Part shown: positions 8,120 through 47,046 of the stretch, piece by piece
How positions within the stretch are numbered: the stretch's first letter is position 1
Layout of the letters: each line of letters begins with the position of its first letter
Position numbers and translations under genes: made by a program
Assembly (NCBI GenBank): GCA_964036045.1
Contig: OZ038378.1
Span: forward strand, 37,634,001 to 37,698,000
Origin: Eutreptiella sp. 'Long Island Sound 2002'
Lineage: Eukaryota > Protista > Euglenida
Direction: 5' to 3'
Length of the DNA: 64,000 nucleotides
The notes under the pieces: model-generated
Told to the model about the DNA's origin: nothing
What the model saw: the letters and a program-made list of their open reading frames with translations, nothing else
Databases searched by the model: none

Positions 8120-8590
8120 CAATGTTTTGGGCGAAATTTCAGCCAACCTAAGGACTAAAGGTTGTGTAAGCACACCAAGTCACAGTAGCAATATGCAGCA
8201 GACCCCATACCACACATACAATAGTTACTTCAAGACACACATCAATTCCAGTCCTATGTATCAACACCAATGTGCTCAGCCTCATCCAACGGCTATGAGG
8301 ATGCAACACTCTCGGCATCACAATCAATGTCTGGGTCACTATCACAAGAGTCAACATCGATGGGGGCACTGTCAGAAGGGGGGTGCAGCACGGGCAGGGC
8401 GGTTGGCAGCACGAATGGAAGCATGTGCATACTGCAACTCGCCGTTGGACTGCTGTGCGAGCTAGGACATTGGCCCCTAGAAAATCCTCAACACCCTCTG
8501 GCACCCTGGTAGAGGAGATAAGGTTTTTCATCGAGTTCAACAAAACCACTTTCACGCGGTCACTGGTGACTTTTATGTTGGACATAGTAC
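8120..8590 (-). mobile_element. Fragment of the Academ-like element (transposase C-terminus plus one palindrome variant)
   Basis: TMSNIKVTSDRVKVVLLNSMKNLISSTRVPEGVEDFL matches 20957-21430. DNA 8190-8380 aligns with 20770-20940. GGGCGAAATTTCAGCC at 8129-8144. Confidence 0.8.
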
Positions 8591-8591
8591 T

Positions 8592-11090
8592 GAGGAGGAG
8601 GAGGAGGAGATGCAGTCCCCCGGTAGGGTGCACCCGCGGCACATCCCCATGGTGCCCGCCGGCCCTCACCGGTCTGGTCGCGACCGAGAGGGGGGTTACG
8701 TCCCAACCTGTCCGGCTAAGCATCATGGCGGCGGCTCTCCTCTTCGTCTCCTTCCCTTGTCCCCTGGCCCTCACAACGCGCACGCGCCACCGCCTTACAC
8801 GCTGCTGGATCCCCCCAGGGGCACGGATTAGGGGGCGAGGCAGAGCGCCAGCTCCACTTCCGGCACGGTCCGCCACCCCCCCACGGGAAAGGGGACGCAG
8901 TCTCACGGGTGTGGGCCCTTAGCCCGCCAGGTACTACCGACTGGGCGGCGTTTGGCCGGCAGGTCTCGGGGGCTTGGTCCGTAGCCCGATCCCCCCCCCC
9001 TTACCGCACAGCACTCCTGCCGGAGACGTCCGCGCGTGGACCTGGACCCTTGAACCCCCCTTGGCCTCACCCTGGGAGCGCACTTGGGGAGTGGCGTGGC
9101 GTGGGGCTCGGCGTGAGGGCCGTAGGGCTAGTCCCAGTAGTTGGTATGAAACCCGCGGCTGGTAACCGGCCATGCGTAGGGTGGCCAGCAGCATATCACG
9201 CAGCCGGCGCACCTAACGGCGGTCATGGGCCCCTCTCGTTTCGTACAATCCCATGTAGCGGGATGGCGGCCCGTAGGTGATGAGCCAGACCAACCGCGGC
9301 GGAAGGCCACCCGGCCCGTCGATGATGACCACCTCAGCCCCGCGGACCTCTTGGGGCCAACGCCCCACGGCCCTGGGCAACGGTCGGTCCGAGTACCAAA
9401 AGACCCGTTGGGGCCCGCCCCAGTCCGGGGGCCTCTGCTGTCCCGGAGGCAAGACGGCGGATAGCCGCCCGCGCTCGCACACGGGCCACAGTAGGCTCGC
9501 CCCTGGCCAGGATCCGGCCATCGCCGGGCGACTCCCCCACTCATAGGAGGTCGGGTCAAATCCTCAGGGACCCGGACCGCCAGGTTTGATGTGTGCCCGT
9601 CGCCGTCACGATAGTAGACCTCACGGGCCGCCGGGATGATGGGCATCTCCCGCTTACGGTCCAAAGCGTCCCAAACGTTTATGATGGTGGCCAGCAACCG
9701 CTGTGCTGCACCCACCACCAGCCCCCGGTCGTACAGGCACTGCAGATCCTCGGGTTCACAATCCCCGGAAGGATCCAGGTACAAAGTGCGGACCCCCGGC
9801 CCTGGGTGGGGGTCGTCGTCGTCCGGCGAGCCCACACTGAGGGCAAAGGCATCCGGGCCATACAGAACTATGACCCCCCAAGGGGATACCGTGCGCCGCT
9901 TCCAACGTGCACACAACGTGTCCAAGCGCATGTGCAGTTGGGTATGAACGGCCAACCGAAATAAGTGCCACCATGGGCAGGTAGAGACCCAATGGCGTGT
10001 CCCCACCCCCTGGAGGCAAGCGGGGCAGGGGCGGTCGTCCCTGGCATGCCCCAATGCCTCACGGCGTGCCATCGTGCGGAGGTGGGCCCCCCACCGGACC
10101 AAGCCGCGCTCCGTGATGGCGTGATAAACCGCCAGGGACTTGCACACCACGTGTTCCGGGGCCTCCATATGGAGACCCCAAAGGCGGCGCGCCCCGGTCT
10201 CGACTAGGCGGTCCACGTTATGCACCCGGGCGTCGCTGTGGGTGAAACAGACCCGGGGCGTCTGGAGCCCCCGGATCCAGCCCACCTCGGGTCGGGCCCT
10301 AGCGGCCTGCTTCTTTGCTTCCCTGTCGGCTGGAATCCAGAAAGGTGCCGACGCGGTGGGAGTACAGGTGCTGGGGGGCACAAAACCCCTCGGCCAGAAG
10401 CCCCCGGCAAGCCCGTGACAGGTCGTCCGAGAGCGGAGAGGACCCCGGGTTCCGAGACTGGACGGCGTCGATGTACCCCTTGCTATCATGGAAGGACCAC
10501 TGCGGGCCCCGGGTGCCCCAAACCACGCACTGGGCCCCGCGTGCCCGCAGCACCTCCCAGGCCACGTAGAGCTCCGCCTAGTAGGATCCATCCACGTGGA
10601 CCGGGGTGGGCACCCGGTACGTCTAGTGCCACCCGGTCACTGGATCCGCCACCACCAGACCGCCACCGGCTGTGTGGTTGGGGTACCAAGAGGCGTCCTG
10701 CACGAAGACCGCCTCAACCGGTATGTCCTGCAGGGTGATGCCTCAAGGTGCACCTCCCGGGCCCACCGCACGTGTCGGGGCCACGGGGGGAGAGATTCCG
10801 GCCCGCGAAAGCGCGATGGCCACCCCGCTTTGCGGGTGCTGGACCAGTCTCTGTAGCCGGCCGCCAGGGCCACGTGGGCATCACCCGCCTCGCTGGCGGT
10901 GCTCGCCGCACCCAGGGGGTGCTTGCATGGTCACCTCCACGGAGTGGCTCTCCGGGACAGCCCAAACCCGGATTTCCATGAGCCCGTGCGCATTTCATAA
11001 AATCCCAAGACACCCCAAGACAGCCCTTGTCTGCATAACAACCCCCTTGTCTTGGTTCAGCTGTCTTACGACACCCCCCCTGCTCTGACC
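8592..11090 (-). mobile_element. 5'-truncated non-LTR retrotransposon remnant (RNase H plus CCHC knuckle, (TCC)n-like 3' tail)
   Basis: RNase H motifs VFVQDASW, AELYVAWEVL and HDSKGYIDAV across frameshifts (~10730-10450). CPACLQGVGTRHWVSTCP at ~9975-10028. (GGA)n run at 8592-8608 at the junction with the Academ-like fragment. Confidence 0.7.
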
Positions 11091-14160: not shown

Positions 14161-17072
14161 GTTGTCGCTACATGTGCCGCGTACTTCGCTTGTTTTCACT
14201 CGTGACGTGTCTGTGGTGGTAAGGACACTACAGGCCTCGGCCCCTTTGGGTTGTGCCACCAATTACCTAAAATCCTATGCTCCATCCATTTGTTTAAAGA
14301 GTGCAACGGCTTAACATCAAATCGCGGCACCGTGGGACTCGGGTGCGAGAGCCACAACTCCAACTTGGCAATCCAAGCCGCCACCAAATCAAACTGTGTA
14401 ACCGGCTGCTGTTAGAAGGCATACCGACGGCACGGCAACCAAAAGGTCGATAGACCTGAGAGGGATATCAAGCACTAAGTGGTCGTCAATAAAAGGTGTG
14501 GGGACGTACGCCACAGACTCACAACCGGCACCAGTGATCCACTCGCATCTGACCCCTTGCCATATGTACGCTCCACCGCGGAGTGCACAAAGACGCTGTG
14601 TAAGCAGCCCATACAGAAGTGGTCGTGGTCTCTCAAACGGGCAGGCATCCAAGCGGGTAAGGGGCTGCATCCGTGCCGCATTGTAGCTTCTTCCACAGGA
14701 GTCTGTGCACAAACTCTCAATCCCATCTCGGGATACTCAGTTTGCGAAAAGCCCCCCACACTGGTTGTGACTGTACTGTCCGTAACCCTCAATCCCTTGC
14801 AACAGCTCTGAGCATGTGCTGCTTAGCCCAGGCACGGGCCAATGATCCCATGTTGCACGAGGCCCCCGTGGCCCACACCTCTGTCCCCGCATAGAAGCGC
14901 AGCAGTCAGTCAACACCGCCGGCATATGCAGTTCGGAATGTCGGCGTCAGCGGGCTCAAGTCACCCGTTGAAATAATACCATAGCATACCAAACGGCCTC
15001 GGGTGCAGGTGCCGCCCTGCAGGTGCCACGTGCATGCATTGGTGGCCCCGCGGGTATTGTGAAAGAGCACGTTATGCCACACCCCCATCTCCTGAATCCG
15101 GTTCTTGGGGGGGGGGGGGGGCACTTGCCTTCCCCAAAAGGGGTGGCATCCCCACAAATGACAATACGAAACTTTGGAGGTACACGGCCTTGGGGTTGTG
15201 CCTTGTAGTGCAACTTCACACGTTGCCCCAGCGGAGGTTCAAGAGGGCCCCGCAACGAGCCCGACCCCCACTGGGCTTGAACCCCACTGGTTTCGACCGG
15301 TAGGGGTTGAGGGCTTGGCGTACCCGTCGTAGGGTGGACCACCTACATGTCCTCGGGAGTTTGTGCAAATTGCGAACAGAAATTTTCATCCTTCGGAACT
15401 AGCCCACCAACGAAACAGCCTCCTCCTCACTCTCATCGCAGTCCTCAAACTGCCCGTATAGCCGCAGGGTGTGGTGCGCCTTGTTGTGGGTGATGATCCG
15501 GGTGGGTTCCCGCAAAATCGCCGTAGCGGCTTTCTGTTGCATACGCGAGCGCTCATGGCGCCATCGGTTAGACAAAGTCCGACTAGGTGCCAAGTGGAGC
15601 TTGGCGACACTAGAGCGCAGGGTGTCAAGAATCTGGGACACGTTGCTAGAGGCCATTTCCTGTCAACAAACAATGCAACGCAATGCAGCCATCCACCACA
15701 CCCAAAGCCATGCTCACAAACCAGGTTCAAGATAGGGCACGAAGACAAGGTTCGTAACAGGGAGCTATCCCATGACAGGTTAGCAAGACACGTCCAACGA
15801 CACGGGGTCTGTCGCCGGACAACCACCCTACCTCACTACCTGTTTTGGTAACTTGTCTTGAGACAAACCCCCTGTCGTGTACCCTGCCTCGGTATCTTGA
15901 CGTGCCATCTCATTACTTGCCCCCCGTCCTTCGTTATCGGTTGTTGTAGCACAGCCAAACCTTCGCCCCCCCCCCCCCCCCCAACCGCCCTGCATTACTG
16001 TGGCAGACACCCCTCCTCCGTTCCATTGCATGGTGCATCCATTGTGGCATTATAATCCCGTTCCTCATTTGCAGATAGCAACTCACGACAAAGGTACAGT
16101 TCATATTGCTTCTGTGGTCTTTGAAAAAAATGAGCACCATGGCACAACGAATTTTCCCATGAACTGGCCATCAAGCTACGTCCGCGACAAAAGGAAATCA
16201 ATGAATATCAAGCCCACACAATGGTGCCAAGTCATGTTGACCAAGTGATACAAATTAAAAGCGGGTCCACACATTGAAAGTGGCGCACACTTGGTGCGAC
16301 TCATTTATACTTGGACCTGTGCATTGGCAGCCCCCCCCCCCTTCGGTTCAAGGAGAGGGTTGGTGCACTCCCTATATTGTAAAGAGCCTGCTAGGACGCC
16401 CCAAAAGGAGGTGAAGGCAAGGAAATCCTGGGGGAAAGGGGACGGTGCCAATGATAAAAATACCCAAAAGGGACAACCTTGCGTCAGAGTGGATTGGCCT
16501 TATTGGGACTGTGATTGGGACTAGGCCGAACTGCTCTTCGCTGCCGTGGACTAGTAAAGCTCCCGCCACTGTGTTGTTATCTCCTCCTGTGCCTCGAGTT
16601 GCGTTTTCAGGCTGTCACCCTAGCTCTGTCCCTAGGCCAGCCGGCCTTCGAGCTCCACCCGCGGCGCCTTCTCTTGGTTGACTTGCACCTTGAGGTCCGA
16701 AACCTCCACCCCAGCTCTGCTCCAGCGCTTCCTACAAAGGGACAGTGGCCTCTGCTTGGCGCGCTCCCAAAAACTGCCTCCTTCAAGGCACTTCGTACTT
16801 CTTCTTGAGCGCATGGACCTCCGTGGCGCGTGTCTCCTTCAGCGCCTTGATCTCCGTGGACGCAGCCCCCTTCGAGGAGCGTGGTGATTGCTCTGCCCTT
16901 GCGTCGCTCCTCGCCGACGACACCAGCTCCTCCAAGAGGCCTCTGGTGGTTTTCCGAGCTTCCGGGCGGTGTACGTCTCATTCCGAATCACCTGTGTCTT
17001 GGGCCTCGGACTTCCCCGACTTGACTTGCACCGCCTCTCGTTCCCATGCCCAGAAGTCATTATCCAAAGACA

Positions 17073-17097
17073 CTTAGGCGTCACAAGTTGCCCACCC
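17073..17097 (+). repeat. Left TIR of copy 1
   Basis: CTTAGGCGTCACAAGTTGCCCACCC; its reverse complement matches 23574-23598 with one mismatch. Confidence 0.9.
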
Positions 17098-17496
17098 CCC
17101 ACCTGGCGCCATGGCCCACGGAAGTCCATGTTGTAATGAGGGGAAAAGTATGTGGAAAGGGGTGTTTTTTTTTGGGTATCCAAACCCCCCTGGTGGCAAC
17201 ATGCAAAAACAAGGTGTGTATTTCAAATATATGCCATTATTTGCATTTGTGGAAACACACAGATTTTCAAAATAAAGACATTCAATCACCAAAATATAGT
17301 GTTGTTTTACATTTAGACCACTGCATTCCAGTGTGGGGGGGGTGGGGGGGCTGCCTATTTTTCTCTCCCCTTTGTTCGAGCTTGATCACAGAACCCCCCT
17401 ATACACCACAGATGAGGGAACCCCAAACATACCTTTCATTGAAGCACACAGAAAACTATCCCAAAGCATGTACTTGTATTTCCTATTTTAACCAAC

Positions 17497-17820
17497 CTGG
17501 CCGAAATTTCGGCCAGCTCTTCGAAAAATGTCCAAACACATGGTCCTATTTGACAGACAGGCCTAAGCTGGCCGAAATTTCGGCCAAGTCCATCGAAACT
17601 CCGAATATGATCACTGAAATGGGTACCTAAGACAGTAGACATGAGCAAGGAACACAGGAGCAGTGACATTTGAACAGGGTGTGCAACATAATATACTCAA
17701 TTACAAGCAAATACTTGCCACCTGACGAATCAAAGCAGACTTTTGCAGTGCCTAAGGGGAAACACAATAATAAAAGGCTGAAGAGGCTGAGGACTGCATG
17801 CTGGCCGAAATTTCGGCCAG
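17497..17820. repeat. Three GGCCGAAATTTCGGCC palindromes downstream of the cargo gene
   Basis: Cores at 17499, 17570 and 17803. Confidence 0.95.
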
Positions 17821-17859
17821 ACTTCATACTGACAGGCAATATGAGCAGCAGGACTGGCG

Positions 17860-20442
17860 TTAGCGCTTGCGCTGACCAGATGCACGGGGCTTCTTAGCAC
17901 CTGTGTTAGCAGGAGGCTTGGCAGGGGCTGCAGCACCAGGCTTGGCAGTGGCAGAGTTCTGTGACTGTGTGGTTCCACCCTGGGATGGTGAAAAATGATT
18001 CACAAAAGTATTCATACCTTTGCCAGTAGGGGCAATAGTGCCTAGGGAGGAAGCTGGGGTGGCCTGAGCGCACTGCGTGCCACTGGGTGAGGGGACAGGG
18101 GCAGTTTTGGGTTTCCTCTTTGGAGTGTGTGTCTCTGGTTGCGACTCTGCCTCCCCATCTTGCTCCTCAGGATCCTCATCTACATACCTAACCCCAGAAC
18201 AATCCACAGGAAAACCTGCCCCCAAGTCGTGGTACACATCCTCCCATGACTTGGGGGGGCACGTGTCGGCGTTGGTGATAGCTGCTCTGATGGACTGAAC
18301 AAACTCATCAGGCACAACAATCTCCTCACCCAAAAGGGCACACACAACATTACAGTCCTTGGAAAACCTGGTAGACATCATGCTTGCAAAATACACAGAC
18401 AGAGTCCCCAGCAAAAACCAGTTGCCTGCCTGTTCTGGGACCGGAACCAGGCTAAAAAGAAATGAGAATATCTCAACACGCATCACAGACGACATGGGTC
18501 CTTCAGTAAAAGCCACGTAACGGGGCAGCCTGTTATCAAAGGCAGTGGCAGAACAAATGGAAACCACATGGGACGTAGAAGTGTACAGCGGGGTCTTGCT
18601 TGACAAATTGTAAATTGCAACATCACACTGATACATATCCTCAGCCACAGTGGCCTTCAAAGCAGCCACAGTGGCTTTCACATCAGCAGACTCACCCGCA
18701 ATGAACACAGGCACACCGGACAAAAGCAGCTGCGCAACCAAGTTATGCAAACTAGCTGTATAGAGGCGGGGCACCTCAATGACACAAGCAGCAAAGGGCA
18801 GTGAACTAATGATACTGGGAACAGAGACTCCACAACGCATTGCCATCAGTTCCACATGGCGTGACTCTGCAATGAGTTTGCCTGTGCTTGACTCAACCAG
18901 GGACTCCCTAGCACACTGGATACTGACCAGACCAGTATCAGATTTTTTACAAACAGGCTTAGCAACAGGCTTCTGCAACAATCCCCGCAACCCCTCATAT
19001 TTGGGTTCCTTCCAAAGAGGGGGCTTAATTACTGCTGACCACGGGGGCCAGGGGTTTTCTTCAGTCCAGGTCCAACTGCCATAGGCTACCTTCAGGTGTG
19101 ATGCAATAGCGCACTGCCTTTTGGCCATCTCGATAGTACCAAGTGTAGCTGCAGACAGGTGGTGTCACAGGGTGGGCTCCTATTGTGCATTAATTGAACG
19201 ACACACAAGCTGGCCGAAATTTCGGGCAAGTCGGTCGATTTATTCGAATACAAACCCCTGTTTGACCAAAAAATACCTCTGGTGTTGTTCACAAGCCCAT
19301 TCGTAACCGCCTCGGGATGAAGAATGTGCCAGGACCACATCTGGGCCTTTTGAACATCTTTTATAATTTTTTTGAGACCAGGTAGGGTACTTTTTGTCCC
19401 ATCCATGTAACTTACGATGTCGCGAAGTCGGTCAGGCGTGATGCCTTCCACTTCCTTGAACGTACCCAGTGCGGGATGTAGTCCACGCTTTTCCATGGCT
19501 GCCATGGCGTCTACTGAAGCAATACCCACAAATTTCAGCAAACGCCCAACGCCACCCCACCGTTTGGCAACAGCACTCTGCACAGGAGAACATGTGGAAC
19601 ACAGACTCTGGCCGAAATTTCGGCCACGTCGATCGACAAAACCGAATTAATAAACGAAACACACCACAGTGCCTTCCTCGGCAGTAACACCACACTCTTC
19701 AAGCATAACAGTAATGTGATGGTACAGGGTGTACTCATTGGCATCCTCATCCTCAAGCCTATCCAGGAGTAGGGACATTCGCTCCGATGTGGTGGATGCT
19801 GAGCCAGCAGTGGTCTGGATTTGATGTAAGCCTGCAAGCCGGCGCCTAGTCCGCCTAGTCCTGTTTGACTTCATAACCACCAAATACCAGGGTCCAATCC
19901 GGAGTCTCCATATTTTTCATCTCAAATTCGGTCTTGTGTTTATGGTTAGCAGTGTAAACATGCTGACCCCCCAACAGAACCCAGCGCGTGGCTGTGCAAC
20001 AGGAATATTCGTAACAGCAGGGTCGAAAAATCAGACGCGAAAACGATACTATCGAGAACAATACCACAACACACATACGAGTGACTTTATAAAAAAGAAG
20101 ATCCTGGATGTAATCCACAGGCGGGGCTGCCTTCAGATCGTCGTAGCGGCGTTGCACGCGATCATCCGAAATCCTACGGACCTGCCCAAATTTTCGGTCG
20201 TGGTCGATAATAATCTGATCCCACCGAACCTTTATTTTCGTCGTTGACGTAACCCAGTCGGATAACTTGATGGAGGATGATGAATTTTTCTTTGGTGCGG
20301 CCTTAGGCTTCTTTTGAAGTCCCTCTGTGCTCGCCTGGTCCTCTTGAGACTGGGATTGCACTTGAGATTGCCCATTGTCTGCTGCAGGCTCACCATTTGG
20401 CGAAACAGCCATGTCCTGTGATACCCCTCCAGGCTCAGTCAT
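17860..20442 (-). CDS. Four-exon cargo protein (~760 aa): ParB/Srx-like N-terminal domain, helical region, putative degenerate MTase-like fold, basic tail; one frameshift near 19850
   Basis: Exons 20442-20079, 19991-19665, 19577-19277 and 19148-17860. GT-AG introns at 20078-19992, 19664-19578 and 19276-19149, in positions shared with copy 2. GQVRRISDDRV...WVLLGGQHVYTA motif. Ends AKKPRASGQRKR*. Confidence 0.75.
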
Positions 20443-20561
20443 AAAATAAAGGGCTGCAGGGCAACATTTCATGAAGGGGAGAGTTCCCAGATAGCAAATA
20501 ACAAGCACGGATCAACCAAAAAAGGACCAAAACGGACTGCCTGACAGGAAAATCGGATAAC

Positions 20562-20718
20562 CTGGCCGAAATTTCGGCCAGCACTGCTCTGCATGTCAAA
20601 CCACTGTGTACAAATACCATTCTGAGAGGCTGGCCGAAATTTCGGCCAGAACCTTATGTCATTTGTGTTCTGGGGGTAGCCATATGACAAAACAACAAGT
20701 CTCGCCAAAATTTCGGCA
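20562..20718. repeat. Intergenic palindromes between transposase and cargo genes
   Basis: Cores at 20564 and 20632; a variant at 20703. Confidence 0.9.
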
Positions 20719-20812
20719 AGAAAAACATGAAACAGCAAATAGACACACCAAAATCACTGGCAATGCGTGGCAGAACCCATACCACAGTGACAAACACAGC
20801 TGCAAACAGAAA

Positions 20813-23022
20813 TCAGTCCCAGTCCTGGGTATCCACACCGATGTGTTCCGCCTCATCTAGGGCTTCAAAGGAGGCAACGCTGTCTGCATCACAATCAATA
20901 TCCTGGTCACTATCACAAGAGTCGACAGCAATGGAATCATCAGGGGCGGGGGGGGGTTATGGGCGGGGGGGGGTCGGGGGGGGTACTGGGGGGCCTCTGG
21001 CTCGGGGCTTCGGGGGTGGCTTTGGGGGCAAGGCAATTCCACCAGGAGCAGCAGCAGCAGCAGCAGGCGGTGCACGGTTGGCAGCGCAAATAGAAGCATG
21101 TGCAGTACGCAACACCCCTTGCTCGGCAGCAGTGCGGGCAGGTGCATTTGTTCGTAAAAAATCCTCAACACCCTCAGGAACCCTGATACGCGCAACCAGA
21201 TTTTGCGTTGCATGCAACAGAACCACTTTTAAACGGTCTGTGGTGATTCGTGTCCTAGACATGGTACCGGGGAACGTCAAATCTTCAACTGCATCCAGTC
21301 TTCTCACCTCAACTTTATAGTCCGGAACGGGAACACAAATGGGCAGGCTCTGTGTATGGGCTGTAAAGATGAATTGTTTAAGATTGGCAGAGAACATTGC
21401 CACGGATCTCTTAGTCAGCACACCACGCAAAACTTTCTCTCCCGGTTGGACAAGGAAAGTTTCAGAAAGAAATCAGACGACTGTTGGACACTAGTACAGG
21501 CAGTGTTGCGGCGACAGTGGGCTGAGAACCGACTCAGAAGTGCCTCACCCAGCTCCTCAAAGTGGATACACCCTAGGGAGGCGGAATGCCACTGACTCCA
21601 AAACAAAAGAGCAACAGCGGTGGTTTTCACATACTCCGTGGTTAACTGTTCCTCCGGCTTTAGGATGTTCAGCATGAGCAGTAGGGACATCTCAAGTGCC
21701 TGCTTAGCTACAATACCGGAACCTGCCCCCCGTCCCTCCCAGTTGCACTCACGAACCAAAGTCCCAATGCTGAAAGCAGCTGGACAGTATGTGTACAGCA
21801 AAGCCTTAAGGGCTAATAACATACGCAAACCCTTGCGCTGAATGGGTGTCAAGTCCCGCTGGCTATTGAGCAAGGAAGTGACGCGCTCATCTAGTCTGCC
21901 TCTATTGGACGATGTGGCTAGCATGAGTCCAAGCAACGTCTTCTCCATATGGATGACCTTGACCTTGCGAGGGAGGATAGACCCAACCTGAAGGGTGTTC
22001 GCCTGCTCCAAAAACTTAATGAACGGCAGGAACGCCCTGTAGATCAATTCAACGCAATACTTATAGCTATGCCATACTCCGTACACCAAAGGAAAACCCA
22101 ACAGTAATTGTGGTACATTCCAGGGAACATAAGCAGCACCATAACACAGCTTAAGTAGGGCAAAGTGTATTTTCATGTCCACAAGCAGCGGAACACAGTG
22201 TCTGGTGCGGTGTTCCACACATGACAAATCAACCACGAGTAGCAAAAGCTCTTTGTGTGTGCCGGAGCGGAGCTCAGACAGGAAAAAGGGTCTCCAGTTG
22301 AGGGAACGGACATTTTTTCTGGCAATATCCAAAGGAGCACGAGCCCAAACTCTCTGAATACCTTGGTTGGCAGCATCAATACGATCAAACATTGCTCTAT
22401 GTGAGCGAAAGATGTCATCAACAACCTTTGGTACCCTGGCCTCAATTTCAGCCAGCTCTGGCAGACCCCGGTATGCAGGTAGGGCAGAAGTGTGCAAACC
22501 AGCAACAGCTGTACAGTTTAGGGTTAAGTCGGGTGAATGGGGATCAGCTCCCGACCTGTAACGCCTCAGGTTATCAAACCATATACAAACTTGCCTACGG
22601 TGCATGGTGTTCCACAAGTTGTGTGCTGCTGGTCCACCAAGATGGTGAATGGACTCCTGCTTAGTGTTACACTGACCAAGGACTCCTACCTTACGGCGTT
22701 GGCGGCGGGACATAATACCCCAGTTGTAACCAGACCCAGTGTTAGAGTATGGGAGGGCCATACGGCGCAGCAGGCAGTATAGAGCATGGAACTGTGACAA
22801 AAATGTCATGTACCATCGTGGGGGCTTCTTCTCAGTGGCGGCAGCCTTCAACTGTGTCACGCAGTGCCAGCTCCTGCGATTCTTTCGCAACAAGAGGCAG
22901 AATTGCAAAGGCTTTTGCAGAGTCCCACCACGTAATGCATTTCGCAACAGCCTTCTGGCTGTAGTAGCAAAAGCACCAGTAACTGCACCATGTACAACAT
23001 TGACAGTAATAGCAGAAGACAT
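20813..23022 (-). CDS. DDE transposase, Academ/DUF6589-like (~735 aa; frameshifts near 21440 and in the poly-G near 20960)
   Basis: WFDN (D at 22573), LLVDMKIH (D at 22177), VYGVWHSYKY, TEYVKTTAVALLFW, FEELGEALLSR (~21544-21558), then Pro-rich and acidic tails. Copy 4 is open across the 21440 frameshift. Confidence 0.7.
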
Positions 23023-23093
23023 TAATGCTGAGACAAGAAAACAGTTATGTAGGAGTGTATGGTGTAATACTCATGAACAACGACAATTGCAAG

Positions 23094-23394
23094 CTGGCCG
23101 AAATTTCGGCCAGGTGTGTTCAAAGGGGAAATCGTTGCTTAAATGTTCAAAAATAGGAAAAGCTGGCCGAAATTTCGGCCAGACCGCCCAAAAACCAGAT
23201 TTTGAGTGCTTGAATAGTGAACAGACCAAAAAGCTGGCTGAAATTTCGGCCAGCCCTAAGAAAAACGAAAATAACTATGCCTATTCACCAGGAAACCAAA
23301 AAGCTGGCCCAAATTTCGGCCAGAAGGGTCAAAAACTGCATATACACATAGTTGTTTGCAATGTTACCCAAAACCTGGCCGAAATTTCGGCCAG
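23094..23394. repeat. Array of five palindromes at ~70 bp spacing upstream of the transposase
   Basis: Cores at 23096, 23165, 23236, 23306 and 23377 (spacing 69, 71, 70, 71 bp). Confidence 0.95.
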
Positions 23395-23573
23395 CTTCGG
23401 AAAAACGTCAAATACAACACACTAGAAGACGGGGATACACAGACTAACACATCAACACGTATTTGAACGGGTGTCACACAGCTCTGCCAACAACTTTGGT
23501 CACATACGTCAAATAACATACTCAAAGTAGAAATGTAGAATGTTGTCAAATCGCGCGTATACGGGGTCCTAGA

Positions 23574-23598
23574 GGGTGTGCAACTTGTGACGCCTAAG
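23574..23598 (-). repeat. Right TIR of copy 1
   Basis: GGGTGTGCAACTTGTGACGCCTAAG followed by the TSD AGACA. Confidence 0.9.
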
Positions 23599-24379
23599 AG
23601 ACATGCGCACATGGTCCGCGACTTGCTGCCGCCCAATGGCCGTAAGATTTGCTCAGCTGGTGCAACAGTTGTGGTTTCATGTGTAGTTCAAAGGGGCCTA
23701 CACGAGGAATCCCTCCTTGATCTGCGTCTTGCCCCCTCCGGGAGGCTAAGATGTGCATTGCACCACTGCTCCGAGTGTACCGGCTCCGTGCCAAGCAAGG
23801 TTGTTGATCGCAATGGGCATCTTCACGTCGCACGGCTTGAGATGCCCCTCGTTGTCGCACGATTTCATGACTGCTCTCCTGTTGCACACGGTAGCCCGCT
23901 TCGAGTGCCACGCAGCATCCGACGGTGTCTGGACCACTGTACTGGCGCACGGCACCGGGTCCGTGGTCTCCTTGCCTGACACGGGCGGGAAGTGCAGCGA
24001 GGGGGCGGGCCGCGGCGCCCCATCCTTGTGCACCACATCCTTCCGCCCCAGATTCTTCTGCCCTAGATCCGTCTTCCCCACGAACGGACCAAAGTGGCAA
24101 ACTCTAGGGGCCACAGGGGTGGTCACGTCCATGGCCAGAAGAACATCCACCGAGGCCTGAAGTGGGAGAGCACGCAAGGACAGGGGGGCATGACACAAAA
24201 TGAGACAGGCAGGTGTCGTAGGATGGGGGCGTAAGACACGGCACCAAACGGGGGGGTTGTCGTTGGACAAGGCATGAAGACAGGGCGCAAGACAATGTCT
24301 TTCATCGGACCAGGGGGGCGGTCGGCGGGGCTGTCCTGGGGGGCTTCCGTGGGACGGGGGACTGTCTTTAAGCCTATGA

Positions 24380-28728: not shown

Positions 28729-31387
28729 CTATCGCCGCTTCCTCAAGCCAGGTGCCTTTGGTTTGGCACCCTTACCAGTAAACTGCCCACCATTTGCTTG
28801 TGCTGCCTGGTCAGCAGGCCTCTCACTGTTAGCACTACCAGTGGCACCACGTCCATTCTTTGTCTGCTGGGAAGGTGTGAAGTGGGCTGCAAACGTGCCC
28901 AGCACCTTGTTGGTTGGAGGCTTTGCTCCAGGCTTGGGGCTCTGCTGTGAGGGGCTTGCTCCAGCCTTTGATTTTGTGGCCTTGGCGGGGGTGCCGTCCC
29001 CCTGCTTGCCGGTTGCCTTTAGGGGGGGGGGGGGGCGTTTCTGAATTCACCGTCGTCTTCCTCTGGTTGGGTGGCCTCCACTTCTTGCTCTACATACCTC
29101 GTTCCCATACAATCTACCGGAAACCCATCTGCAAGGTCTTCACACACTCGGTCCCACTGGATTGGTGCCACAGTGTCGCAATTCGACACAGCAGCCCTCA
29201 AATCATTAACAAATGACTCAGGAATAGACTTCTCCTCAGACAAGTATGCAACTGCAATGTTCACAGGAAACATGCTCTGAATGGACAAGGCTGCAAAAAA
29301 AAGTGGCTGTTGTGTGCATACCATTACCCATGTACTATTCTGCTGAATCAAATCCAAAGCATACAGCAAATAACAGAACACTTCGACAGGAATGGAAGTC
29401 GTCACGGGGCCCTGAATATAAGAAACATATCGAGGTAGGCGTGCAAAAAACTGGTGCAGACTACGCAGTGCAAAAGCAGTCTGTCCCATGTTGTACAGTG
29501 CTAATGGCTTGGACAAGCTGTACACATGTACATCTGCATAGAAAAATTCCTCAACACAGGCAGCTTTTAGGTTGCTAACACAGGCCCGAACATCAGCAGT
29601 CTCACCAGTGACTGCCACCAAAATACCATTCAATACAAATTGTGCCACAATATTGTGCAGGGCCAACGTCCACATACGTGGGACCTCAATGAGGATGCAC
29701 ACAAATGGCAGTGCACTAATGAAGCTGGGAACAGGGCAGCCTGCCCACAAAGGGAGTAGCTCAATTCTACCCTCCTCCTTCAGAACTTTCCCTGTGTTTG
29801 TCTCAATAATGGTGTCAGCCAACTCAAGACTCAGATGCCCACCATCAAGCTTTTCAATACTTGGTGTCACACGGGGCTGGTGAAGCCTGTCACGTAACCC
29901 TTGGTAAAGGTCGGAGGTCCAACAGACTGCCTTAACAACAGAAGCCCACAGTGGCCAAGGTGACTCAGGACTCCACACCTAGCTGCCATACAGGACCCGG
30001 ATGTGGGCCATAATACGACATTGTTCTTTGCACATGGTCACAGGACTTAGATTTGCTGCAGAGGGTATACACAAGAGACAAATGAGGCAGTTGAAAAGTG
30101 GTATGCTTATGAACGAAAATCGAGGGACCTCGGCGAGTTTTCGCCCAGCTCAGCGTCAGTAACGAAATAAAGACCACGAAATCACTACCACTGAGAGTGC
30201 AAAATAATGCAGAATAAGTCCGCATACCCCTGGACTCGTGCACAAACCCCTCTGTGACTGCATCCGGATGGAGCACATGCCAACTCCACAACTGCTCAAC
30301 TCTGGCCAACTTTATTTCTCGTTTGATACCCAGTACTGAGCTTTTGGTACCCGACATGTAGAGGACAATGCTTGACACTCTATTTGGCATTAATCCTTCG
30401 CACTCTTTGAAAACACCAAGCGCCGGTTCAACATCTGGCTTCTCCATCCCATAGACTGCGTCAACAGCTGGCTGCCCAATGAATTTGACAAGCTTGCCCA
30501 ACCCTGCCCAACGCTTGGCTACAATGCCTTAAGACAGCAAGAGACAGGTAAAAATACAGGCTTACAGTAATGCTTAACGGATGCAGTCGAAAGGTTGAAC
30601 ACACCACGTTGCCTTCATCAGCTATAATACCAATTTTAGCCAACATGTTCTGAGTATGGGTGAGCAGGGTGGCATCTGGAACCTCCGCAATATGCTCCAG
30701 TAGCAGTGTCATCCGCTCATTGGTTGTTGACACACTACTGCTTGTGGTCTGCACTTGATGAAGCCCTGCGAGCTTTCTTCGTATGGGCATGGGAGTGTCT
30801 CTTCTAACCTCAAAGCCTTCAAACTCTCTACTCCATGTAGGCAGGGGGTGATTTTTGGATTCCTTGTCCTTGCCATGTTGCACAACAGCCGTGTAGATGT
30901 GCTGACCCCCTATGGCATACCAAGACCCAGTTGTACATGAGGTAACAAGCAATACAGAGTACAATCAAATGGCACGAAAGATCGAGAACAATCGAAACAC
31001 GACACGGCAGAACATACGCACGCCAGGTACTAGCAGTAAATGGTCAATACAATCAGGTGGTGGTGCCCGTGATAAATCGTCATAGCGGGCTTGAACTCGG
31101 TCGGGGTTCAGCCCACGAACCTGGCCTTCAGAGTGGTCTCTATCAATCAGGAACTGATCCGATCGCACACGAATGTGTTTCGTGGAAGTGAGGTAATGTG
31201 CCAGCTTGATTTCTGCTTTTCCTTTGGGTTTGGGCTTTGGCTTCGGTTTGGCGGCTAGTTTGGGCTGTGGTTCTGGTGCGGGGGCTTCAGCAGCACGAGT
31301 TCCCTCACTTCCACTAAGATGATCTTCATCATTGGCCAGGTTTTCGGGCGGTGTACCAACATTTTGAGAGATTTCCATAGAAGACAT
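28729..31387 (-). pseudogene. ParB-like cargo gene of copy 2 (spliced; one premature stop, poly-C frameshift)
   Basis: GQVRGLNPDRV, WYAIGGQHIYTA, RRKLAGLHQ, WSWHVLHPDAVT, LIEVPRM, GFPVDCMGTRYV; ends AKPKAPGLRKRR*. Colinear with copy 1. Confidence 0.75.
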
Positions 31388-31688: not shown

Positions 31689-33890
31689 TCAGCCCCAACC
31701 ATGTGTACTCCGTTCCAACTCCTCTTCATCATCAAGCACTTCCAGGCTGGAGTCACTGCGCACCTCTTCTGGGCACTTACTGGCACTATCAACACAATTG
31801 AAATCATCCACCACCGGTACAGCACAAGGCATGGGGTGGAGGGCGGGGGGTTTGGGGGGGGTCTGGGGGGAGGGGGGGGGGGGGCTGGGGGGAGAACCAC
31901 CGGCACACCGCGCGCTGGGGGTTTGGCGGCTTGTTTTGGACCGTTACCACCGGCTATGTTGATACTGTAGTAGTGTGCACTTCGTTGCCTCTGATCACCA
32001 TTGGAGCGTTTCTAATTATATGCATTCAGAAAATCCTCAACACCATTGGGTATTTTAGTCTTGGCAATCAGACACCATAGGCTATGCCGAACAAGGCTCA
32101 AAAATTGCTGCTCTGTAACCCTTGTACGCGAGAACACTCCCAGAAATTGCATGCGGGGGGCTTCATCAAGACGTTTCACCACATACTTATCCTCTTCTAG
32201 GACAGCAATGGGGAACCACGCACGTGATGTGTTCTGAATGAACAAATGCACGTGCTTTGTGTACTTGTCCACAGACTTCTACGTCAGGACACCCTGGCAT
32301 TTTTTCTCTCCTGGAAGTGTGGAGGGGAGAGTTAAAGAAATATCGGTCGTCTACTGCACCGACTGGGCATTACCAACCTCCCTTGACCTCATGAGTAGGC
32401 AACTAAGCATTGCTTCGCCATACTCCTCAGAAAGCAGCCAACCAAGTGCCCGGGTGTGCCACTGGGACCACAAAAGCAGTGCTACAGTATTGGTACGCAG
32501 GTGTTCAGTGCTCATCCACTTTTCAGAAGGTATGATATTCATCATCAAAACAGTACTCATTCCAATGCATTCTTTTGCAGCTGCACTGGAATTCAGAGAG
32601 CAACCGTTCCTGCTACATTCACGCACAAGAACCCCTAGTGCCAAGAGTGCTGGGCAGTACGAGTATAACAGGGCCTTCAGGAATAAGAGACATTTCAGAC
32701 CCGGTCTTTGAGCATCACACAACTCAGCAAGATTACTCATAAGGACCTGGGTAGTACCATCAAGCCGTGCTTTGTTAGTAGTTGTAGCCAGGAACAAACC
32801 AACAATGGTTTTTTCCATGTGACGCAGTTTGAAATTCATGAGCACCACAGCTCCTGCCTTCAGGTCCCAACCCTTTAATAATAGGGGCAAATGCCTTATA
32901 GGATATTTCCATAGAATACTTATATGGGTGCCAGACACTGTAAAGCAACGGGTGTCCCAACACGAACTGGTCTACGTGCCAGCGGGCATAGCTTGCTCCG
33001 AACGACATTTTCAGGAGTGCGTAAAAGATCTTCATGTCAACCATAAATGGCACAATCCGTCTCGTCTTCACCTGCAAGCATTCTAGCCCCCTGACAAACT
33101 CCAATAACTCAACATGACTTCCACATTTCAGGTGTGATAACAGAAAGGGCCTCCAATTGAGGGATACCACAGCATTGCGAGCATAGTCCAAAGGTGCACG
33201 AACCCAGGTCCGCAGAATGGGCCCATCAGGGATTGTACTTCTTTGCAACAACAACCCAACACAGCGAACAAGGTAGTCCACAACCCCGGGCATACATTGT
33301 GCAACAGCATCCAGACCGGGCAGAACGTGGTACTGGGGCAGCTCAGTACTGTGCAACACACCGACGGCAGTCACATTCGAAGTCTTATCAGGGCTATGGG
33401 GGTCCACCCCATTGATGTAGCGACGGTAATAGTCGAACCACAGTGTAACTTGATGTCTCTCAAATGAATCCCACAGGTGTGAAGCTTGAACGCAGGCCTC
33501 GGCCGAGATAGTAGGGGGATTGATAGTGCATTCCCCTGCCATTGCCAGCTTACGGCGGATGGACTCGGTCATTGTACCGCGATATGAAGCTCCAGTGGCT
33601 CTCTGAGCACGGGGATATGTCAGCACTCGCACAATGTTATGCAGTGAGGAAACTTGCTTCTGCAGTACCAACAACCATCTTGGCCGACGACTACAACCGA
33701 AGGCCGCCCGCACATGCCCAACATTACGTCTAGTCTTTCTTTTGTGACGCAAATCCAGTGGTAGCTGCAGCAGCGGGAGTGCCCTCCCTTTGTTCAATGC
33801 CACCCGAATGACAGCCTTCGGGGTACAAACGCGAGTACCCCCCACGGCCGTTTGAAGAAAGCGCACATCAATCATGTCTCACACCCACAT
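31689..33890 (-). pseudogene. Academ-like transposase of copy 2 (frameshifted)
   Basis: WFDYYRRY, FMVDMKIF, YSVWHPYKY, EEYGEAMLS; acidic tail ending STHGWG*. Confidence 0.75.
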
Positions 33891-34213: not shown

Positions 34214-36173
34214 CCGGGAGGAGATGCCACATCGTGGTCGGGCGCACCGGGGGGGCAACGCCCGACATGGCGAAGGAGATCTCCGACCCGCATCGACGTT
34301 GTCCCCCTTGCAGATCTCGATATGGTGCACGCTCCCCACAAAGAAGAGGATGCTCTGCTCGGCGATCTCCATGACGGCGAGATCGGACGTCGGGGCGGAG
34401 CGGGGGAGGAAGGTGCAGTGAAAGGGGCACGTGGGGGGCCGGCCGGGAGGGCAGGCATCCCATGGTGGCGGCTGGTAGCCACCATCAGCAGCATGTCCAC
34501 CCTCTGCTGCTGAATGGTGTCCCATTGCGCCTCCCCCGCATCGCGCAGGGCCGTCCCCGCGTGCACCGCCACCTGGTAGTCCGCTGACAGGCAGAGGAAG
34601 CTACTCAGGTCACACCCCGAGATGTCCCTGCTGTCGGGGGGTAGCACCACAGGGTGGGTGGCGACATCGGTGTGGGGGAGCTGGGCCCCATTCCCCACAC
34701 TTGCCACGATGCCGGCTGGCGTCGCTGGGTGGAGATTCCCAACCTGAGGGACACTTTCCATGACGGGGGGGTGGAACTTCTTGAAAAGAGGCCCCCCGCC
34801 CCCCGACCCCAGGGAGCTTTTGCTTTGCCAACGCCGCACGAGATCCGAATCCCGCGCGTGATCTGCACTCCGCCCGGCGTTGAAAAGCAGCTCAAAATTT
34901 TTTGCGACAACTTTTTCGTCGCCGCTGCCCCACGCCTTCATCACCTTGTTCCACCCCATCTCACAATCCCGTGCTTCCACAAGCCCCCGAAGCACAATGT
35001 AGCCGTTCCCATCAACAAAGTTGAGGGGCGGCTGGGAGGGACAAACCCTGTCCGGGGCGGGGTCCGGTTGCCCATCACCCGATGAGGGGGTTCAAGAGGG
35101 GGTTCGGTGCGGAGGGGGGGTTCGCTGAAACTGAAGGGGGGGGCGCATGAGGCATCACGGTACCATTGCAAAGAACCTGTGCTGTAGAAGGTGGGGTGGG
35201 TGATGTCGGCGATGTGCACCTATGGGGGGATGGTGGGATGGAAACGGGCGATGCCCAAATCCTCCCACCACCGGGGCCAGGCAAGGTGCCAGGACAAGGG
35301 GGAAATAGAGTGGTCGGATGCTGCCCCTACAACAAGATCGTGCAAGCACACCATCGCGCAATGGGGGGGGGGGGTATACGCAAGGTTAGTGGTGGGGTAC
35401 ACCCGGACGTGGGCGTCCTTGGGCTTCCCCACCGGGTTAGCATGGAATTGAGCAGTTGGTCAATGGTGGCGGGTTGAGGGGTCAGATGCAAAAAGTTAAG
35501 AGAGGCGAGTTGGGAGCGGAGTTCCTTCCAGAAATATGTGGACCAGGCCTTCCCCCCAAGATAAGAGTTGCGGGAGGGGCTCGGCACGTCAATGTGAATC
35601 ACCTCGCGGGAGGGGTCGAGGGATGTTGCCGAGCCCACAACATCGTCCACCCCCAGTAACCCCGACTAGTAGGTCGCCTCCTCCAATTGGTGGTGGGCGA
35701 CGGGGAGGGCTTGGTACTTCGCCAAGGTGTCGGCAGCATGATCGGGGGGGGGCTGCAAGGAGGCGAGCTGTGACAATGCTTGCTGGGACATGGTCAAAAG
35801 AAGATGCAAAGAAAGGCTTTGAGAGCTGTGAGAAAGCGAAACAGTGGAAATTCAGGCAAATTCGTACGAAATTCGTACGAATTTCGTACGAATTTTGTGC
35901 GAATTTCACAATCTTGTGAATCTGTGAACCTAGCGTGAATTTTTGGGTGAATTTGGGTGCGTGAATTTCGGATTGGACCGAATCTCACCAAATGTGTTGA
36001 ACCATGTGGCTACTTAAAACCTCTAATTTGCACACATTTGTTGGTTCTCCCTTTGGGCGAAGATAGCACGAAAAACGCACCCGATGGCACCAATTTACGC
36101 GCAAAACACAGCAAAAAGTTGTGACATTCACGGTACCGTGAATCTCCCATTCAAACAGCCGGTTCACGAAGGA
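34214..36173 (-). mobile_element. TA-flanked TIR element (copy A, left-truncated) carrying a 2OG-Fe(II) dioxygenase-containing gene
   Basis: Ends GTTCACGAAGGA|TA at 36173. ATTCACGGTACCGTGAAT palindrome at 36126. TTCGTACGAA array at 35861-35891. 35220-36173 aligns with 58030-59006. Confidence 0.8.
34400..34995 (-). pseudogene. 2OG-Fe(II) dioxygenase domain (PhyH-like double-stranded beta-helix)
   Basis: GAQLPHTD (HxD at 34674-34666), LSSFLCLS, DMLLMVATSRHHGMP (distal His ~34465), and a downstream Arg before a hydrophobic strand. Confidence 0.7.
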
Positions 36174-36504
36174 TACATATGTTGAGACTTGTATACACTA
36201 CTTGTCTTGTATTAGCACCTGTGTTGGTTCCTCTCTTCCATTGCAATGTCAAAAGTGGACAACCATGCAAAGGGGTGGATTACAGTGTGGGGTCTAAGAT
36301 GGGGGTAATGAGGGCTCATGCCACCAAAATGCCGACACAATACATCCTTGCGAGGGAGTGTATGCAAGTGCAATGGGATGGTACCATAGCGGATGTCAAA
36401 ACGCTGCCCTCCTTCACCTCCAACCAATCCGTAGCGTGCTTTAATGATGTGCTTCAGGATGTTTTGGAGGGGAACGTCAATTTGCAGGTGGTAGTGGTAC
36501 GGCC

Positions 36505-38161
36505 CAATGAGGAGGACCTTGAGCACCTGTTTGTTCGCACACCCTTGCGCCGAATGGTAGTTAAATCGCGATGGTTAGCAAACAAAGAGGACACACCTTC
36601 ATGCATCTTGGCTCTATTGAACGGTGTGGAAAGCAACAGACCAAATGTCTTTTCTATGTGGATACCCTCTGCCTTGCGAGGTAGGATAGAACCAAAACTG
36701 TAGGCTTGTCGCCTGTTCCAAAAAATTAATGCAGGGTAGGAAGGCCTGATAAATAAGCTCAACACCATACTTGTACCTGTGCCAAATGCCATATATCAGG
36801 GGAAACCCCAAGAGTAATTCGGTACGGTCTAGGGGACATAGGTTGCACTGCAACACAGCTTCAACAGTGCATTGTGTATTTTCATGTCTACAAGTAGCGG
36901 TATGTAGTAGCTAGTGCGGTCTTCAACACATGTCAGGTCAACTGCGAATTGCAAGTGCTCCTTGTGTGAGCCACATCGCAGGTCCAGAAAGAAAAAGGGT
37001 CTCCGGTTTAGGGAATGTACATTATAGCGTGCAATATCCAATAGGGCACAAACTCAGACTCTTTGAACACCTCCTTTCGCAACATCCATAAGATGAAAAA
37101 GTACAAAAATAGATTGAAAGACGTCAATTGCGACCTTTGGTACCCCGCCCTCAAGTTGTGCCATCTCCCGAAGACGCAAGTAGCCGGGTAAAGCAGCATT
37201 GTGCAACACTACAGCTGCAGTGCCATTCAAGGCTAAGTCGGGTGTATGTGGATCAACACACAACCTACAATGCCTGGAATTGTCAAACTTAGTTGCAATG
37301 CCAGCACGCAGGCGAATACAACCATGCTTGGAGTTGCACTAGCCTAGGGCTCCTACTTTGCGTCGCAGCAGGCAGGACTTAATTCCCCAATTGTACCCTC
37401 AGCGGCAGCTAGACAAAGGGACGGCCATACGGCGAAGATCACAATAAAGCATTGGAACCGCTCCAAAAAAAATTGGGTACCATCGTGAAGGGTTCTTTTT
37501 GACGGCTACTGCCTTTAGTTCGGCAATTGACTGACACTATTTCTGTTTACGTCGTAGCATGCAGAATTGCAAAAGCTTCGGCATATTTCCACCACGCAGA
37601 GCAGTTCGAGCGACCCCTTTGGCTATGGAGAGAAAAGCACCATCGGCTGCACAATGGAAGACATTATGGTAAGAGGTGAAGACATTAAGAACTACACAGA
37701 AAAAGAAAGGAGCTTTGTGGAATAAGACAGATAATGATCGAGATCCTTCAAACCAACTAACGCACCAAACCTCGGGAAAATTTCGGCTGAATGTGTTCGC
37801 CGGGCGACGAAAGAGCTATAAATAAGGAAGCCTATTTGATGTGAAACCAACAAAAGCGGACAGAAATTTCGGCCACACGCAAAAAAATTGAACATAGGTA
37901 TGCCTATTTTCATGGGAGCTCAAAAGGTGGAAATTTTTCGGCCAGCTGCGAAATAACTTTCAATCATGGTACACCAAATGACATCGATAGCCAATGTGAC
38001 CTGATTACACATTGTTTCAATGTGTGTCAAATAAGATTGGTAACAATCTTGCTAAGATATGTTAAATGGCATACACAAAACAGACAAATGACATAGTCTC
38101 AAGGTGTGGTTATAACGGGTTCCTAGAACGTGGTGTCAGTGGGCCCTTTGTGACGCCGAAG
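36505..38161 (-). mobile_element. Academ-like element copy 3 (right end plus 5' half of the transposase)
   Basis: LLVDMKIHNALLK, IYGIWHRYKY, IHIEKTFG. Degenerate palindromes at ~37773, 37859 and 37930. Right TIR-like GTGGGCCCTTTGTGACGCCGAAG ends at 38161. Confidence 0.8.
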
Positions 38162-46650: not shown

Positions 46651-47046
46651 AACATCGAGCATATTCCTTTGGCTACCATCTGTACGTTTTTGGCCGGAGG
46701 CGCGCTTTTGTAGCCAACGGTGTTGCACGTAAGGTTTTGAAAACGCGTAGAGCGCGCACAACGCTTACAATAGGCACAGACCAAGTAACACGCACAGAAC
46801 GCCGAGCACGCCGAGCACGTGCCTCCAGAGGCACGTGAAGAATTGAAATACCGGAACGAGCAGAACCCGCACAACGCGCAGCACGTCGTTTTGCACGCGG
46901 GCGCACATCGGGGAGGGGCCGCGTCCTCACAGTTGGGTATCAAGCCTACGCAGTTGTCCCCCAGGGTTCGCACTGGTCCCATGGGTAGGGATGGCAGAGC
47001 CCTCCGCCCCCATGACCGTCTCGTTCAAGCCCCCCACTCCACCACA

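Follow-up and report, generated by a model that had tools for sequence, protein, structure and literature searches.

Why should a DNA transposon carry many copies of one palindrome in its own non-coding DNA, introns included, beside a gene for an accessory protein? This question is raised by an element lying within a 64,000-nt stretch of the genome of the euglenid Eutreptiella sp. 'Long Island Sound 2002' (assembly GCA_964036045.1, contig OZ038378.1, positions 37,634,001 to 37,698,000 of the forward strand), hereafter the window, to which all coordinates refer unless a contig is named. An earlier annotation made from the letters alone (the sequence-only reading) described the element as a transposase gene paired with a cargo gene for a ParB-like protein that may recognise the palindromes. 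The element, here called family A, is confirmed as a bounded, two-gene DNA transposon with terminal inverted repeats (TIRs), and the most likely mechanism, held with moderate confidence, is that the accessory protein uses the palindromes to recognise its own element, with regulation or protection as the result.

The ends of the window copy (Table 1) share a 19-mer, CTTAGGCGTCACAAGTTGC, whose only two exact occurrences in the window are 17073-17091 (+) and 23580-23598 (-). Two further full-length copies, both on Mb-sized contigs of assembly ENA ERZ25074135 (L001:3522-10058 and L007:5424-11958), are ~97% identical end to end and have identical termini, which begin CTTAGGCG. They are flanked by target-site duplications (TSDs) of their own, tccct (L001) and atatg (L007), so that the duplication is 5 bp long and of different sequence in 3/3 copies. 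Duplications of 5 bp that differ from copy to copy show that the element is real, as are its ends and the length of its TSD, and the size of 6526 bp, the 25-bp TIRs and the TSD AGACA given by the sequence-only reading are borne out. Sequences of the element's genes fall into 90% clusters of 134, 175, 267 and 248 members in one assembly. The window copy is defective, with a frameshift in each gene, and intact versions of either gene occur in hundreds of copies; since intact gene pieces are found in hundreds of sequences, the family is young and probably moved in the recent past. The window copy is thus a slightly decayed member of a high-copy cut-and-paste family of a microbial eukaryote.

The family A palindrome is 20 bp long, CTGGCCGAAATTTCGGCCAG. 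Allowing up to one mismatch, GGCCGAAATTTCGGCC is found 12 times inside the element, compared with 0.01 expected in the whole window, and a thirteenth site (20703), which has three mismatches in the window copy, is perfect in L001. In all three copies the 13 sites lie at identical positions, and all of them are non-coding, so that the 13 copies counted by the sequence-only reading, intronic ones among them, hold with their positions fixed. The 20-mer is exact in 11 of the 13 sites of L007, and their 45-nt flanks are near random, with a similarity of 0.54 compared with 0.51 +/- 0.012 for pieces taken at random from the element. Tandem Repeats Finder detects no tandem repeats in the ~70-bp arrays of family A because the spacers have diverged; plain tandem repeats were therefore rejected as a description of the arrays. 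What is kept is the 20-mer together with its 68-71-bp spacing, and the spacers are not kept. As for the claim that the motif is found only within copies of this family, it stands for the exact motif, which is confined to family A within the ~116 kb of host DNA examined, and gives way for its variants, which related families bear. An additional degenerate copy lies inside the transposase coding sequence (22433-22478). Neighbouring palindromes can also pair as a long hairpin, and two stretches holding such neighbours (20562-20649 and 23096-23395) give sub-threshold matches to microRNA (miRNA) precursors in Rfam, at 22-24 bits compared with cut-offs of 60-100.

Both genes lie on the minus strand and run in the same direction. 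The four exons that the sequence-only reading had proposed for the cargo gene, separated by GT-AG introns of 87, 90 and 128 nt, are supported because the exons are conserved and the introns diverged between family A and a related family, C, and because in some relatives exon 3 runs straight on into exon 4. In the window the cargo gene carries a 5-nt frame-shifting deletion at ~19856, in exon 2, and its counterpart in L001 splices to an intact protein of 760 amino acids. Exon 3 is conserved in family C and in the contigs L005, L003 and L002; against Pfam it gives HTH_47 at E 0.061 only.

The strongest of the new results comes from the palindromes in the relatives of family A. Family C, also present in the window, has a cargo 40-57% identical by exon and a transposase 40-44% identical to those of family A, and bears CTGGGCGAAATTTCGCCCAG at 31569, 31639, 34087 and 34156, which differs from CTGGCCGAAATTTCGGCCAG by a symmetric change that preserves the palindrome. 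The 5' end of this copy seems cut off near 34175, at a jump in GC content. L005, from another sample, encodes a more distant cargo (31% identical in exon 4, 46% in exon 3) and bears one copy of ATGCGAATATTCGCAT in intron 2, two in intron 3 and one 27 nt past the stop codon, i.e., in the same places as family A, where the innermost downstream site lies 39 nt past the stop. In a third family (L128, L129 and L130; cargo 26% identical) the cargo gene has seven copies of TAGTGGCGAAATTTCGCCACTA on its upstream side and four on its downstream side, spaced 69 bp apart. Arrays therefore adjoin or sit inside the cargo gene in 3/3 related families with cargo sequence (26-48% identical), the ~70-bp spacing being common to two of them and the placement in introns 2 and 3 to one (L005). 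A very different palindrome, GTGTTCGCGGCCGCGAACAC, is found at L131:30-145 (another sample), upstream of a transposase 29% identical to that of family A, on a short contig that holds only this transposase and its upstream flank; it has the order TTCG...CGAA, the reverse of the CGAA...TTCG of the other families, and a spacing of ~45 bp. Two further contigs with distant homologs, L004 and L006, have no flanking DNA.

Since these palindromes change symmetrically and keep their spacing and intronic positions across deep divergence, they point to a reader that is sequence-specific, probably dimeric, encoded by the element and co-evolving with its sites. Such an element-encoded reader is the most economical explanation; it may be the cargo protein or the transposase. 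A metagenome scan for three CGAAWWTTCG cores at gaps of 32-62 nt returned 120 loci, none with a cargo or transposase homolog, the pattern being too loose. One metagenome contig of the Joint Genome Institute (L097) has two copies of AAATGCGAATATTCGCATAA, a 16-mer shared with the L005 family, and no coding homolog on the 2.1 kb examined; it may be a non-coding part of that family.

What, then, does the cargo gene encode? Structure prediction followed by Foldseek, a check that the sequence-only reading had suggested, was run on the cargo, and for exon 4 it pointed to a domain which that reading had missed. Exon 4 has 186 homologs at E<=0.001, all of them devoid of Pfam domains, and an AlphaFold2 model built with 55 of them has a mean pLDDT (predicted local distance difference test) of 77.7, with residues 1-333 folded. 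Its best 50 Foldseek matches in the PDB are all METTL14, M.PvuII, M1.HpyAVI or CcrM (E 7e-6 to 1e-4, probability 1.0), METTL14 being the best structural match at 12-15% sequence identity. Among viral models (BFVD), most of the best named matches are 'DNA methylase N-4/N-6' proteins of phages or giant viruses, one of the matches being a ParB/Srx fusion. On this predicted structure, exon 4 has the fold of the beta-class N6/N4 DNA methyltransferases (PF01555) or an MT-A70-like one (PF05063). Near the start of the domain the homologs conserve the string G-x-W-x-W-[TS]-x3-P-[WF]-P-P-[WLIV]; at the expected position of motif IV, where the register is inferred, the 55 homologs read [DNSE]-P-[WF]-P-P-[WLIV] and have no conserved polar catalytic residue, and the strand expected to bear the S-adenosylmethionine (SAM) motif I, FxGxG, lacks its glycine loop (register again inferred).

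The N-terminal half of the cargo is less clear. The same structural approach, applied to this region with intron 1 retained in frame (17 sequences, shallow alignment), gave a model of pLDDT 43 whose Foldseek matches are meaningless. Nothing usable came from Pfam, NCBIfam, PHROGs and PADLOC on any cargo exon or on the distant homologs, sequence and profile searches of the PDB were negative for all four targets tried, and tblastn of cargo pieces against phage genomes gave chance matches only. The similarity to ParB was examined with hhalign: the spliced N-terminal regions from three cargo families were set against a profile built from eight DGQHR-type ParB-like proteins of phages. This gave a weak, colinear local alignment of 70 columns over the whole ParB N-domain (pairwise P 0.0075, HH probability 5%), in which LLGGQHVYTA of the cargo aligns with ILDGQHRYLGA of ParB; a reversed-sequence control gave P 0.09 over 19 columns.

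The second gene encodes a putative transposase. Its open reading frame (ORF), read from 23022 downward, spans 535 amino acids in the window, where it is interrupted by a 1-nt deletion at 21457, and 722-747 in the intact relatives P0041 (the 90% cluster of 267 members) and P0042. Three candidate catalytic residues, D150, D282 and E489 (codons 22573-22575, 22177-22179 and 21556-21558), are conserved across relatives down to 29% identity, as are the blocks WFDN, LxDxK, GVWHxYKY, VRECNWxGR and SEExGEA. No match was found in Pfam, NCBIfam, PHROGs or PDB sequences, nor any recognised DNA-binding domain. The conserved D/D/E positions make the DDE transposase announced by the sequence-only reading plausible, with no match to any known family. 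A 5-bp TSD is typical of Transib, whose transposase is RAG1-like and whose termini are of the CAC type; family A agrees with this superfamily in TSD length only, its termini being different and no RAG1 or other Pfam match being found. Sola1, reportedly described by Bao and colleagues in 2009 with a 4-bp TSD and a DDD transposase, does not fit the 5-bp TSD. Near the C-terminus a G/C homopolymer tract (20940-20990, and its equivalents in L001 and L007) codes for a proline-rich stretch; its length differs between copies, altering the reading frame of the acidic tail, and it may be a hotspot of assembly error or polymerase slippage.

The mechanism favoured here is that the accessory protein, expected to enter the nucleus because of its basic N- and C-terminal stretches, would bind the family-specific palindromes as a dimer, through its ParB-like/helical N-terminal half, its methyltransferase-fold domain or both. 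Members of its family would in this way be recognised over their entire length, at its own promoter, in its own introns and at the transposase promoter. If its domain is active, it would then place a chemical mark (N6-adenine or N4-cytosine) on the sites; more likely, since the catalytic and SAM motifs are degenerate, it would be a non-catalytic reader like METTL14 and would protect the CpG-containing sites, control the two genes or counteract silencing by the host, with the transposase acting at the TIRs. A bolder form, which we put forward tentatively, is that a catalytically dead methyltransferase-fold and ParB-like reader co-evolves with its palindrome, giving each family a private code laid out in ~70-bp phased arrays and in its own introns, and coats or insulates the element against silencing; if true, this would be a eukaryotic, transposon-borne counterpart of parS/ParB or of VANC, built from a pseudo-enzyme.

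A number of results weigh against self-recognition by such a protein. The ParB likeness is statistically weak: no sequence in Pfam, NCBIfam, PADLOC or the PDB matches the ParB-like region of the cargo at E<=10, and the box-II/P-motif arginine (GxxR, DGQHR, GGCHR) is absent from all cargo families, in which GGQH is followed by V, I or G. Because the HH probability is 5%, the arginine is absent and no hidden Markov model (HMM) matches, 'ParB-like' is kept as a reasonable but unproven label, and of the ParB-like cargo of the sequence-only reading there remain the weak colinear match and the GGQH motif. The likeness to methyltransferases comes solely from the predicted structure, with TM-scores that are modest (0.25-0.31 on the query, <=0.57 on the target), no Pfam match in the 55 exon 4 homologs, and a null result when the exon 4 profile was compared by hhalign with 10 genuine PF01555 enzymes of phages or E. 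coli (Prob 0.09%). As the motif IV residue is variable, the glycine SAM loop is missing and this profile comparison is null, the modelled domain is probably non-catalytic. Two relatives, L002 and L003, have no palindromes in the DNA examined, and the L131 array upstream of a related transposase means that the transposase could equally be the reader.

This last point leads to an account in which the palindromes are subterminal repeats bound by the transposase, as in Ac/Ds, P and En/Spm, the internal and intronic copies being by-products of duplicated subterminal units and the accessory protein doing something else. It would explain why arrays lie near both ends (five sites 205-505 bp from one, three sites 425-750 bp from the other) and why a transposase relative as distant as that of L131 has its own, very different array upstream, and a common descent is suggested by the identity of 65-78% over 49 nt among introns 2 and 3 and a 3' unit. 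However, in the L005 family the intronic sites are kept at the same two intron positions with a different palindrome, which argues for maintenance rather than accident; moreover, the arrays of L128-L130 flank the cargo gene on both sides, and the transposase has no recognised DNA-binding domain. Although it appears rather unlikely, transposase binding is the main rival. If instead the accessory protein were an active DNA methyltransferase, marking the adenines of AAATTT or the cytosines of flanking CG/GGCC, the palindromes would carry a family-specific epigenetic mark, which has also been suggested for the algal accessory proteins with ParB-like and methylase parts. The modelled fold matches N6-adenine and N4-cytosine DNA methyltransferases, the sites resemble type II recognition sequences in being palindromic around a shared CGAAWWTTCG core, and fusions of ParB to methylases are frequent in phages (PMC12704722) and have been described from algal transposons (PMC12477816). 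Yet the motif IV position and the SAM loop look unsuited to catalysis in the 55 homologs, the closest solved structure is the non-catalytic METTL14, and there is no profile similarity to real enzymes, which makes an active enzyme quite unlikely.

Alternatively, the palindromes could act as RNA hairpins of the 5' leader, the introns and the 3' untranslated region (in small-RNA pathways, splicing or 3' end formation) or as host transcription-factor sites driving both promoters. The two ATGs indeed have arrays 75-370 bp and 120-280 bp upstream of them, an 8-bp stem can form within each 20-mer and neighbours can pair, the miRNA-precursor-like Rfam matches mentioned above are in keeping with hairpins, and the symmetric changes between families preserve self-complementarity. 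A known RNA family was nevertheless rejected, as all Rfam matches stay below threshold; a host factor leaves the different palindrome of each related family unexplained, and a spacing of ~70 bp in two distant families fits protein phasing on DNA better than RNA hairpins. We therefore consider this very unlikely.

Self-recognition by the accessory protein has a working analogy in the VANDAL elements of Arabidopsis, whose accessory protein VANC binds family-specific non-coding motifs and counters silencing. TnpA of En/Spm (CACTA) likewise binds subterminal repeats and promotes demethylation. In both, however, the motifs are short, non-palindromic and not intronic by design, and the superfamilies, Mutator and CACTA, differ from family A. 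METTL14 has a degenerate motif IV (EPPL), a likeness to exon 4 that suggests a nucleic-acid-binding scaffold rather than an enzyme, although METTL14 itself is an RNA-methylation subunit that forms a heterodimer with METTL3 (MT-A70 family).

The statement of the sequence-only reading that no eukaryotic transposon with such a layout had been described is outdated (PMC12477816; bioRxiv 10.1101/2025.02.11.637652): the layout is not unprecedented, because brown and red algal transposons as well as phage and archaeal fusions are documented. In the brown alga Ectocarpus, the 21.5 kb element Sola1-1_Ec32 encodes an accessory protein that combines a ParB-like region with a DNA methyltransferase and is proposed to bind and modify its own element (PMC12477816). 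By its published description, it resembles family A in that a TIR DNA transposon carries an accessory gene next to that for its transposase, and its make-up is compatible with that of the cargo, a putative N-terminal ParB-like region together with a predicted N4/N6 methyltransferase-type domain. In contrast, the element described here is 6.5 kb long and has a 5-bp TSD, its transposase belongs to no recognised superfamily, its two genes are co-oriented, its predicted methyltransferase domain is undetectable by Pfam and has degenerate catalytic and SAM motifs, and its cognate palindromes are explicit, numerous and partly intronic. In red algal Plavaka elements (EnSpm/CACTA), the Bostrychia genome paper reports PAG2, an N6-adenine methylase with a SET domain, and PAG3, a ParB-like protein with a 2-oxoglutarate (2OG) oxygenase, with tandem inverted-repeat arrays adjoining PAG3 and self-binding and self-modification proposed (bioRxiv 10.1101/2025.02.11.637652). 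Family A shares the inverted-repeat arrays, here beside a putatively ParB-like accessory gene, and has a predicted DNA-methylase-type domain in its cargo; in Plavaka, however, these are two separate proteins in 17-19-kb elements of a known superfamily, as opposed to one fused protein in a compact element, with no 2OG oxygenase or SET domain and with sites spread over the whole element. Phages also have fusions of ParB to N6_N4 methylases and archaea have fusions of ParB to MT-A70 (PMC12704722), and in chlorophytes helix-turn-helix (HTH) domains of ParB type are fused to Dam-like enzymes (PMC4738411). The phage, plasmid and archaeal fusions have the module order proposed for the cargo, a ParB-type N-domain and then a beta-class methyltransferase fold, and the same association with mobile elements, but are prokaryotic or viral, detectable by Pfam and intact in DPPY and FxGxG, and the cargo described here matches no phage genome in sequence (tblastn) and none of ten phage or E. 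coli methylases in profile. Distinctive here are the compact two-gene form, with an unclassified transposase, a 5-bp TSD and degenerate catalytic motifs, and an explicit 20-bp site at 13 positions, cargo introns included, with visible variation of the site among sister families.

Table 1. Features of the family A element and of the related family C element in the window (TSD, target-site duplication; TIR, terminal inverted repeat).
Feature	Position	Strand	Remarks
Transposon, family A, window copy	17073-23598		6526 bp
TSD, left	17068-17072		AGACA; recurs at 23599-23603
TSD, right	23599-23603		AGACA; matches left flank
Left TIR	17073-17097	+	Element 3' end in gene orientation; 19/19 exact, 25 bp with 1 mismatch
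Right TIR	23574-23598	-	25 bp with 1 mismatch
Three palindromes downstream of cargo stop	17497-17516, 17568-17587, 17801-17820		Region 17497-17820
Cargo exon 4	17860-19148	-	Predicted methyltransferase-fold domain, then disordered basic tail
Intron 3	19149-19276	-	128 nt, GT-AG, one palindrome
Palindrome in intron 3	19210-19229
Cargo exon 3	19277-19577	-	Helical, possible HTH region
Intron 2	19578-19667	-	90 nt, GT-AG, one palindrome
Palindrome in intron 2	19608-19627
Cargo exon 2	19668-19991	-	GGQH motif; broken here, intact in L001
Intron 1	19992-20078	-	87 nt, GT-AG
Cargo exon 1	20079-20442	-	Disordered basic N-terminus and first half of putative ParB-like region
Intergenic array, three palindromes	20562-20581, 20630-20649, 20701-20720 (degenerate)		Upstream of cargo ATG; 68-71 bp apart
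Putative transposase, single exon	20813-23022	-	Frameshifted at ~21457; G/C homopolymer tract 20940-20990 disturbed
5' subterminal array, five palindromes	23094-23394		Upstream of transposase ATG; 69-71 bp apart
Family C element	28074 to ~34175	-	Left end CTTAGGCCACGCTAACTGCCCACC at 28074
Family C cargo	28735-31258	-	Decayed, with stop codons
Family C transposase	31853-33872	-

Elsewhere in the window, 44269-46664 holds an older family A copy of 86.5% identity that has lost both ends and retains only most of the transposase and the 5' array with partly decayed palindromes. Transposase-related fragments are found at 36535-37945 (71% nucleotide identity over ~1.1 kb, with a degenerate palindrome nearby at 37859) and at 8129-8596 (71-75% over ~0.4 kb, with a degenerate palindrome at 8129). 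This region of the genome is a graveyard of the family A transposon group. A different repeat family, present in three copies of 78-96% identity (35231-36182, 58058-59012 and 62063-62580), bears runs of ATTCGTACGAA, an 11-bp unit with a palindromic sequence of its own (TTCGTACGAA), and palindrome arrays therefore seem to be a general habit among the transposons of this genome. Outside the element, Pfam gave no match above its cut-off for the ORFs of the window; an ORF at 51043-51873 (-) matches the piggyBac-type DDE_Tnp_1_7 weakly (E 0.0034, below the cut-off). Within an ORF of 370 amino acids (46819-47931), 18 in-register copies of a CTC/ATC-rich repeat, one every 9 bp, lie at 47032-47238; on the other strand this repeat would encode an acidic run rich in Asp and Glu.

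The element also indicates an unclassified group of transposases that leave 5-bp duplications, and a possible pseudo-methyltransferase serving as a DNA reader. Detailed knowledge of accessory proteins by which a transposon recognises and modifies itself is limited to VANDAL and En/Spm of plants, and the algal class with ParB-like and methylase domains, noticed in 2025, is without defined binding sites and resides in giant, mostly decayed elements. Family A, in contrast, is a small, high-copy and, by its intact gene copies, probably recently active system, in which the site is explicit, sister families carry natural variants of it and both genes are present in intact copies, and it makes binding specificity, the co-evolution of protein and site, DNA modification and anti-silencing directly testable.

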